From assembly GCA_946965045.2 (NCBI GenBank), contig OX337238.1, positions 744,001 to 808,000 on the forward strand: 64,000 nucleotides of DNA, written 5' to 3'. The notes beneath the pieces were generated by a model. That model was not told the origin of the DNA, did no database searches, and worked only from the letters and a program-made list of their open reading frames with translations. Source of the DNA: Epithemia pelagica. Lineage: Eukaryota; Protista; Bacillariophyta. Numbering within the stretch: the first letter of the stretch is position 1; every line of letters begins with the position of its first letter. The position numbers and the translations under genes were made by a program. Shown here one piece after another: positions 31,192 to 33,603 of the stretch.

Positions 31192-31530
31192 GATTGGAAC
31201 TCTTGTGTCGAATTGCGGTCCAAACCACAACAACAACAGAGTTGGTGTAGCGAAACCAAAAAAGATACCATTCCCACCCAAAGATTCTTTTGTACTCTCC
31301 ACATGAGTCATGTACACTTCTTTTCGGTCTCGTACTCTCTCCTCTCTCTTAGAATGAGCGAGTCCCGCGGGTATCAGCTCTCATGCGAACTCCATAATAG
31401 AAATCAAACGTCGCGAGAAGTGTCACGCAGTCACGCACACGAACGCGAATTCGTCATCCGAGGGAGATTTCGTTGCACCGTGAGGAGTCCATTCAGCAGA
31501 AGAAGAGAGAGAGAGAGAGAGATCAGCACC

Positions 31531-32796
31531 ATGAGCAACGAACCCATGAGCAAAAAGCCGCGGCTTTCGTCGTCGTCGTCATTGAGTGACGAGAAACAAG
31601 GACATGATGTGGAATGGAAGCGGCCTTTGGAGAAGGCCGATACCGTGAATTTTGACCCAACTTCGGTGGGTTTGTCGTCGGACTTTTCCTTGACGGATTG
31701 GTCCGATTTGAAAGGATGAGCCTGTAAGATCCCCCAAGATGAATTGCAATCGATGCTGGCAACTCTGAATTTGGGGGATGGGCAAAATGTGGGAACCGCA
31801 GATGGAAGGATTGCCTTGGATTGTTCGGTACGACCGACACGCTATCATCGTTCGGGACAAGCACAACAGTACACGATTTCCACAACCGACTTTTTCTTTC
31901 CCTTAGTGGATTCTCCCTACGTGCAAGGTCGGATTGGAGCCGCCAATGTCTTGTCGGATTTGTATGCGCAGGGCGTGGAACACTGTGATTTTGTCCTCAT
32001 GTTATTGGCGGCCTGTCGCGCCATGCCGGCGGCGGATCGAACCATTTGTACCCAAGAAATGGTCAAGGGCTTTCGGGATGCCTGTCGACAAGCCGGAACC
32101 GTCGTCACGGGAGGACAGACCGTCTTGAATCCCTGGCCCATTATTGGAGGTGTCGCAACCTCGGTCGTGGCCGAGGGGGAATTTGTCTTTTCCGATGGCG
32201 CCCAAGCCACTCAAGTGGTGGTCTTGACCAAGCCGCTGGGAACCCAAATTGCCGTCAATGTACATCAATGGAAAAAAGATTTTGTCGACGAAACAACGAC
32301 GAACAACAAGAAGAAGAAGAATCAGTGGCAAACGATTTTGGATCAAAACGTCTTGACGGGTGACCAAGCTCAAGAGTTGATGCACAAGGCTGTGTGTTCC
32401 ATGGCGCGGTTGAATCACATTGGCGCTCGGCTCATGCTGAAACATGGTGCCACGGCCGCGACGGATGTCACAGGATTTGGATTGTTGGGCCATGCCCAAA
32501 ATTTGGTGGACAATCAAAAGGCAGCGGTAGGAATCGAATTGCATACCTTGCCGTGTTTCCACGGATCGGTGGCCGTGAATGAACAAATCATGGACTTTGG
32601 GTTGACCAAGGGAACCTCGGCCGAAACATCGGGAGGATTAATGGTCGTACTGCCATCACAGGAAGCTGCCCAAGCCTATTGTACTGAATTGCAACAATTG
32701 GATGACAATTGTCCAGCTTGGATCGTGGGGAACGTCGTGGACGATCCTGATCGCAAAGCCGTCTTTCGAGAACCCATAAACATTTTGCACATTTAA
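31531..32796 (+). CDS. SEPHS2: Selenophosphate synthetase (selenide, water dikinase), Sec-containing SPS2 type; UGA at 31717-31719 = codon 63; 421 aa
   Basis: Track ORFs 31213-31719 and 31744-32796 are in one frame, separated only by TGA in LKG-(TGA)-ACKIP, matching the active-site KGUGCKVP. TTDFFFPLVD, ANVLSDLYA, GGQTVLNPW, LTKPLGTQ, ATDVTGFGLLGHA, ETSGGL. Confidence 0.93.
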
Positions 32797-32942
32797 TAAT
32801 CTGGAAAGGATGATATGGGGATGTGAAACGTTGAAGAACACAGCGCACGACAGAGGACAAGAGAAGAATGGAAAACCGGGATGCAAGTGGCATGCTACAT
32901 GTCGCAGGATGGTGTGAGAGTTGGTGGTGGATCGACCCACGT

Positions 32943-33012
32943 GTAACCAGAATGACAGAGCATGCTTGTATCGTTGCATCAATGACACAAGCTGTTCTTG
33001 AAAAAGAGTTAC
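32943..33012 (+). promoter_or_regulatory. Candidate SECIS element in the SPS2 3' UTR
   Basis: Helix I GUAAC/GUUAC; core AUGAC (32952-56)/UGAA (32999-33002); 12-bp helix II AGAGCA-u-GCUUGU/ACAAGC-UGUUCU; apical mini-helix UCGUUG/CAAUGA; ~150 nt after the stop. Confidence 0.75.
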
Positions 33013-33603
33013 CGGGGTGCAAAAAGAGTCTCTAGGCAGTTCCTGTCCTTGACGAGCCGGTCCATTCGGCCCGAAACCCCCTCTCTTTGGTATTGGAGGG
33101 GGTTTTGGTATACAGTGCACGGACGAGTTCTCTCCTGGTTCCGGAACCAAAACACACATGGTTCCAGGATACACGAGGGAAATGCATCGCTCGACCCACT
33201 TTTGCCTTGGATCCATGACGTTTTCTCTCTCTGCCCAACAAGCAGCAAACTCCGTCGCCGCACAACAAGCGACACGGCACGATGAACCGCGTGAGGGGGC
33301 ATACCACCATACAGTAGGTACAACGCAGTCTAATATTAGATGTCATGAAACATTCTGGCATAGTCTCTAGAGATCAGACTTTCACTTCTACTTGACCGAT
33401 GCATCCGAGTGTTGATACTACCTCCTCTCCATATGTCATAGTAACGCAAGCTACCCGAACATATCACTACTCAGTATTCCAAAGGAGATGTATTATAGAT
33501 ACATAATAATACGAGAACTTACATTGCATGATAGGTAGTGCTGATTCCCATCGTGACGGTTCATTTCTCCCGAAAAAAATCTTTCTCCGCGTATCTTTCT
33601 CTC

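Follow-up and report, generated by a model that had tools for sequence, protein, structure and literature searches.

Sec insertion in vertebrate SEPHS2 is directed by a SECIS element in the 3' UTR, and the canonical SECIS carries an unpaired AA(R), or CC, in its apical loop or bulge. The SECIS of bacterial Sec-SelD lies inside the coding region and is read by SelB. In the trypanosomatid SEPHS2 enzymes Cys46 and Lys49 are the catalytic residues of a glycine-rich N-terminal loop, and selD is complemented neither by the Cys46Ala protein nor by N-terminally truncated forms without the loop (bioRxiv 10.1101/2020.01.28.922716). Among diatoms, SPS2 was one of the 16 selenoproteins of Thalassiosira pseudonana, where it was detected through its SECIS (Lobanov et al. 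2007, Genome Biol 8:R198, PMC2375036). Diatoms are reported to have 20–44 selenoprotein genes each, with SPS as an algal selenoprotein family (Jiang et al. 2020, PMC7539508). SPS2 has also been used as a marker of Sec use across eukaryotes, the stramenopiles included (Mariotti et al. 2015). Sec-type SPS2 in diatoms is thus a known kind of gene, on record since 2007. As diatoms use selenium and have SPS2 as one of their selenoproteins, the gene described here is a further, biologically expected case. We read it, with a probability of roughly 0.94, as a single-copy, intronless nuclear gene of the Sec type (SPS2/SEPHS2/SelD) in which SECIS-directed Sec at codon 63 would give an active selenide,water dikinase, and this in turn would supply SepSecS.

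Within the window, the whole 64,000-nucleotide stretch of Epithemia pelagica DNA that was analysed, the SPS2 frame runs on the forward strand from an ATG at 31531–31533 to a TAA at 32794–32796 (1266 nt, 421 codons plus the stop, intronless). Its sole interruption is the TGA at 31717–31719, there being no further in-frame stop, and a list of open reading frames splits the gene at this codon into two entries of the same frame, 31213..31719 and 31744..32796. The sequence-only reading had joined these entries into one frame broken only by the TGA and had given the product as 421 residues; the sequence and the codon count agree with it on both points. The context of the TGA is TTG AAA GGA TGA GCC TGT AAG ATC CCC (LKG*ACKIP), which places a predicted Sec codon at residue 63, in the catalytic position of a U-x-C-K loop. 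Upstream lies an N-terminal piece of 62 codons (31531..31716, + strand) and downstream a C-terminal piece of 358 codons plus TAA (31720..32796, + strand), which begins with the ACK of the loop and continues into the AIRS N and C domains.

The N-terminal piece opens with a poorly conserved Ser/Lys-rich segment followed by a conserved stretch, TVxFDPxSxGL...LTxxSxLKG, that leads into the active-site loop. Comparison with relatives gives good support to the ATG at 31531 as the real start. An MSN start is common to the window, a 95%-identical relative (L008), Epithemia clementina (L009), and Thalassiosira transcripts, and in E. clementina in-frame stops precede it. In the 95%-identical relative the stretch before the ATG lies in another frame, and is therefore not coding. 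Directly 5' of the ATG, presumably in the 5' UTR, lie some 20 nt of (AG)n repeat (31500–31523), which the same relative also has.

The two pieces were searched separately against profiles and structures. No Pfam or NCBIfam match was found for the N-terminal piece alone. The C-terminal piece matched PF00586 (E 6e-13) and then PF02769 (E 2e-14), and by itself scored 196.4 bits against the selD equivalog model TIGR00476 (cut-off 125), the match beginning at model position 12; two other SelD models, NF010705 and NF002098, matched below their own cut-offs. The best solved-structure match was SEPHS2 of Leishmania major (5l16, E 8e-87), and the match to human SPS1 extended over nearly the full length (E 6e-76). 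Bacterial SelD proteins (E. coli 3u0o, Aquifex 2yye) belong to the same family but are far more distant, with E values of 1e-25 to 1e-28 over the central domain only. Judged by the order of its AIRS domains and its TIGR00476 score, the gene is a selenophosphate synthetase (SPS2/SEPHS2/SelD), the identity proposed in the sequence-only reading. It shares fold and domain order with vertebrate SEPHS2 (Sec) and SEPHS1 (Thr; PDB 3fd5 and 9hjt), together with the active-site loop K-G-[U/T]-x-C-K-[VI]-P-Q-D.

In the alignment to 5l16 the Ala following the TGA pairs with residue 47, which makes the TGA Cys46 and the Lys three codons on Lys49, on the assumption that the deposited chain (398 residues) follows the native numbering. 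In human SPS1 the residue aligned with the TGA is number 29. By these alignments the TGA falls exactly on the catalytic Sec/Cys position, as had been proposed. In contrast to the diatom gene, the SEPHS2 enzymes of L. major and Trypanosoma brucei are of the Cys type and need neither recoding nor a SECIS. The catalytic position is followed by Ala in the diatom, whereas human SPS1 has Gly there and the Leishmania enzyme Ser. The U-A-C-K spelling, which had been singled out as a departure from UGCK, is real and is conserved in all diatoms examined, but as this position varies between the human and Leishmania enzymes it is a trivial variant and brings no functional novelty.

The locus was compared with genomic loci of six relatives, these being the 95%-identical ENA assembly, E. 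clementina, another ENA assembly, Nitzschia inconspicua, Cylindrotheca closterium, and Seminavis robusta (L013). Their SPS2 proteins are 62–95% identical to that of the window, and every one of the six has the in-frame TGA within LKG-TGA-ACKIPQDELQ, with a conserved peptide in front of it. In the 27 codons just ahead of the TGA, five relatives differ from the window by 6–13 synonymous and 4–11 non-synonymous changes (the 95%-identical relative is identical there). Synonymous changes occur on both sides of the TGA, and the flanking Gly, Ala, Cys, and Lys codons vary at their third positions while the TGA stays constant. Two MMETSP-named Thalassiosira transcript contigs (L043 and L044) carry an uninterrupted frame with the same LKG-TGA-ACKIPQDELQ; the window protein is about 64% identical to the Thalassiosira cluster. 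An in-frame UGA with coding conservation on both sides, seen in seven genomes and two transcript contigs, is by this comparison an arrangement far beyond chance.

Protein databases give a different picture of the family. When the best 120 relatives from a collection of 5.8 billion proteins were inspected (all at least 61% identical; the closest named one is from E. clementina, 72%), the motif [U/C/X]-x-C-K was present in none of the 120, and for at least 106 of them the first residue is the Met located 11 codons after the TGA (Met 31753 in the window). The same N-terminal truncation, with loss of the catalytic loop, affects every named entry from Epithemia, Seminavis, Cylindrotheca, and Nitzschia. 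Automated annotation had been expected to truncate the gene, and as none of the best 120 relatives carries the active-site motif, the truncation is systematic. No Cys-type full-length form occurs among the best 120 either, so Sec seems universal in the diatoms sampled. The only apparently full-length relatives in the databases, two EukProt Thalassiosira entries, read LKAEPVKIP (P0080) and LKGEPVKIP (P0123) at the active site, with AEPV and GEPV where G-U-A-C would stand. These were considered as Sec-less Thalassiosira enzymes and rejected, as transcripts of the same 90% cluster (L043:1-230 and L044:1-245) read LKG-TGA-ACKIP; the AEPV and GEPV segments look like artificial, frame-juggled readings around a stop. 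The correct model of the present gene would be a protein of 421 residues with U at residue 63, and the practical value of the finding lies in annotation.

The genome (60.5 Mb, 23 contigs) was searched for the Sec machinery. Two tRNA-Sec genes were found, at C5:1577366-1577451 and C16:1367530-1367615 (77 and 74.6 bits; cut-off 47). Both are tRNA-SeC with anticodon TCA according to ARAGORN, and their alignment has a mean column identity of 97%. SepSecS is encoded at C5:485626-487137 (TIGR03531, 435 bits against a cut-off of 225), and eEFSec on C1 at about 6069569–6071902 (E 1e-114 to residues 26–563 of human eEFSec, 5izk). A candidate SBP2-like protein is assigned from its L7Ae region (C2:4497373-4497621), which lies in a 961-aa open frame and has SBP2 (7zjw_B, E 6e-17) as its best PDB match. 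For PSTK there is a candidate at C1:4903008-4904045, whose best family is eukaryotic PSTK (TIGR03575) at 64.6 bits, far below the cut-off of 382; no PDB match was found for it. A working Sec pathway had been predicted for this alga from the SPS2 gene, and the genome bears the prediction out with tRNA-Sec, SepSecS, eEFSec, an SBP2-like protein, a PSTK candidate, and Sec-type glutathione peroxidase (GPx) genes.

The GPx genes with a TGA at the active site lie at C13:2352480-2352794 (+), which reads NTACQ-TGA-GKT, and at C16:777981-779757 (-), where two tandem copies read VNVASK-TGA-GLT; a TGA-free GPx copy lies at C1:3799197-3799529. An ATGAC...TTGA hairpin is present 3' of the C13 gene (L033, about 2140–2190). 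No second SPS gene was found in the genome, SPS2 being the only SPS homologue. A GTPase gene beside the tRNA-Sec on C16 was considered as eEFSec and rejected, as it is of the EF-Tu type, probably mitochondrial, and the real eEFSec is on C1. PF25461, the bacterial SelB barrel, had no match in the search, which is irrelevant for eEFSec. Note that in the interval C16:1365050-1367615 the second tRNA-Sec also lies about 250 nt 3' of an L7Ae-family match (a 261-aa frame, probably ribosomal eL8), and that the EF-Tu-type gene beside it has two exons; this proximity to translation genes looks coincidental. In S. robusta a KTI12/AAA_33 gene (L013:1018-2058, -), a homologue of the PSTK candidate, stands head-to-head with SPS2. 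The two would form a possible Sec-pathway gene pair in Seminavis that is not syntenic in the window.

These data bear on the reading in which the TGA is a true stop and the gene is decayed or split, leaving a 62-aa peptide and at best a 347-aa protein that starts at Met 31753 without the catalytic loop. Gene callers do give the truncated form for nearly all diatom relatives, and that Sec is actually inserted at this UGA, and that the enzyme is active, is what we infer for this organism from sequence. However, the 27 codons preceding the TGA are under protein-level constraint in the same frame in seven species, and the TGA has stayed the same in all of them, where drift would be expected of a decaying gene. 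Moreover, this is the only SPS gene of a genome that has the full Sec machinery (with PSTK as a candidate) and Sec-GPx genes, and the failure of the loop-less and Cys-to-Ala trypanosomatid enzymes in selD complementation (bioRxiv 10.1101/2020.01.28.922716) speaks against a functional truncated product. We consider a true stop very improbable.

In the Sec reading of the gene, the mRNA would present UGA at codon 63 and, some 1.2 kb further on in the 3' UTR, a SECIS, which would recruit the SBP2-like protein as well as eEFSec carrying Sec-tRNA(Sec), such that the ribosome inserts Sec rather than terminating. In the resulting 421-aa enzyme Sec63 and Lys66 would lie in a flexible N-terminal loop (G-U-A-C-K), and the enzyme would convert selenide and ATP to selenophosphate, the selenium donor with which SepSecS builds Sec-tRNA(Sec). 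As SPS2 would make the selenophosphate used for Sec-tRNA(Sec), the enzyme would depend on the pathway that it feeds. As the only SPS in the genome, SPS2 identifies the organism as one that uses selenocysteine, and it would make the selenophosphate supply dependent on selenium itself.

The predicted SECIS is a hairpin at 32937..33017 (+ strand), 155 nt past the stop codon in the 3' UTR, in contrast to the position of the element in bacterial Sec-SelD. Helix I pairs GTAAC (32944–32948) with GTTAC (33008–33012) over 5 bp and is followed by a kink-turn core of ATGA (32952–32955) opposite TGA (32999–33001), that is, AUGAC at 32952–32956 facing UUGAA at 32998–33002. Helix II (32957–32969 with 32987–32998) has 12 bp and one bulged U, and the apex consists of an unpaired A (32970) and C (32986) below a 6-bp mini-stem (32971–32976 with 32980–32985) closed by a 3-nt loop. 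The unconstrained minimum free energy is -28.4 kcal/mol, and the core stays unpaired in that fold. Helix I, an internal loop, a core of the UGAN/KGAW type, and helix II are thus all present, the UGAN/KGAW consensus being that given in the SECISearch3 paper (PMC3753652). When the 600-nt 3' region was shuffled with dinucleotides preserved, none of 300 shuffles gave an equally stable ATGA..GA hairpin whose helix I reached 5 bp. An ungapped SECIS scan missed the hairpin owing to the bulged U; a motif-plus-fold search and a fold-based scan both recovered it.

A hairpin that starts with GAATGAC and ends with TGA is found in the 3' UTRs of all six other diatoms, 74–279 nt past the stop codons, and a GAATGAC...TTGA hairpin is shared with the Thalassiosira transcript contigs, as is the active site. 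In an alignment of six hairpins the GAATGAC...TGA core bases are invariant and compensatory changes among the six diatoms affect five of the eight pairs that RNAalifold places at the base of helix II (a seven-sequence MAFFT alignment was left out because its 3' arms were misaligned). The diatom element differs from the vertebrate SECIS in having, in the minimum free energy fold, one unpaired A (32970) on the 5' side where the canonical element has AA(R), and no AA in register is conserved in the six orthologous hairpins. It also differs in being undetected by Rfam SECIS_1 (RF00031), which had no match in the 3.5-kb region or in the 106-nt hairpin. Across all 60.5 Mb of the genome, too, the same model matched nothing at E<=1 despite the clear selenoprotein genes there, so the blank at the hairpin says little and appears to reflect insensitivity of the model rather than absence of a SECIS. 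A covariance model built from the six hairpins gave a weak score (11.4 bits, E 0.76) to the matching Thalassiosira transcript hairpin, which had not been used to train it. The model found no GPx SECIS and was rejected as a general SECIS detector, being too specific for SPS2. The hairpin would be one more diatom SECIS element missed by standard models. A tentative and rather doubtful extension, suggested by the single unpaired A of this hairpin and the lack of an AA in register in its orthologues, is that the SECIS directing Sec insertion in diatom SPS2 does without the canonical unpaired AA(R). If that were true, then, taken together with the blank of SECIS_1 over the whole genome, diatom SBP2 and eEFSec would recognise a relaxed, lineage-specific SECIS form that current predictors under-detect.

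The hairpin and the machinery genes also weigh on whether a near-cognate tRNA (Trp, Cys, or Arg) could read the UGA, or the codon could be reassigned, with a residue other than Sec inserted. Sequence by itself does not give the identity of an inserted residue, which leaves such a reading a small probability. Against it, the codon coincides exactly with the catalytic Cys/Sec position, a conserved SECIS-type hairpin lies downstream, and the genome encodes tRNA-Sec and the dedicated factors. Moreover, the genes examined have in-frame TGA at active sites only, such as those of GPx, unlike the pattern of a reassigned code. We give non-Sec decoding no better chance than a true stop.

The Sec reading further requires that the TGA be present in the gene and retained in the mRNA. 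Frame-preserving GT/GC..AG pairs that span the TGA arise by chance in the window (96 of them), but none of these has a pyrimidine tract or an intron-like acceptor, and even the shortest would remove 17 conserved residues. The TGA is also present in the assembled Thalassiosira transcripts, and is therefore not spliced out in that diatom. Assembly error is ruled out by the agreement of seven independent genome assemblies. That the TGA is a misread TGT or TGC Cys codon, or falls in a short intron, is the least probable of the alternatives: single-base errors occur and chance splice pairs exist, but two transcript contigs carry the same TGA collinear with the genomic frame, and no candidate intron would cost fewer than 17 conserved residues, the active-site loop being among them in most cases.

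Three relatives share part of the gene order 3' of SPS2. A dienelactone hydrolase gene follows SPS2 in all three (L008:4369-5154, L009:4703-5440, and L010:4562-5362), and in two of these (L008 and L009) an ankyrin-histone deacetylase gene follows as well. Judged from the L008 offsets the window should have the same downstream order, from about 33620 onward, with the SECIS lying within the spacer of about 0.8 kb between SPS2 and the hydrolase gene.
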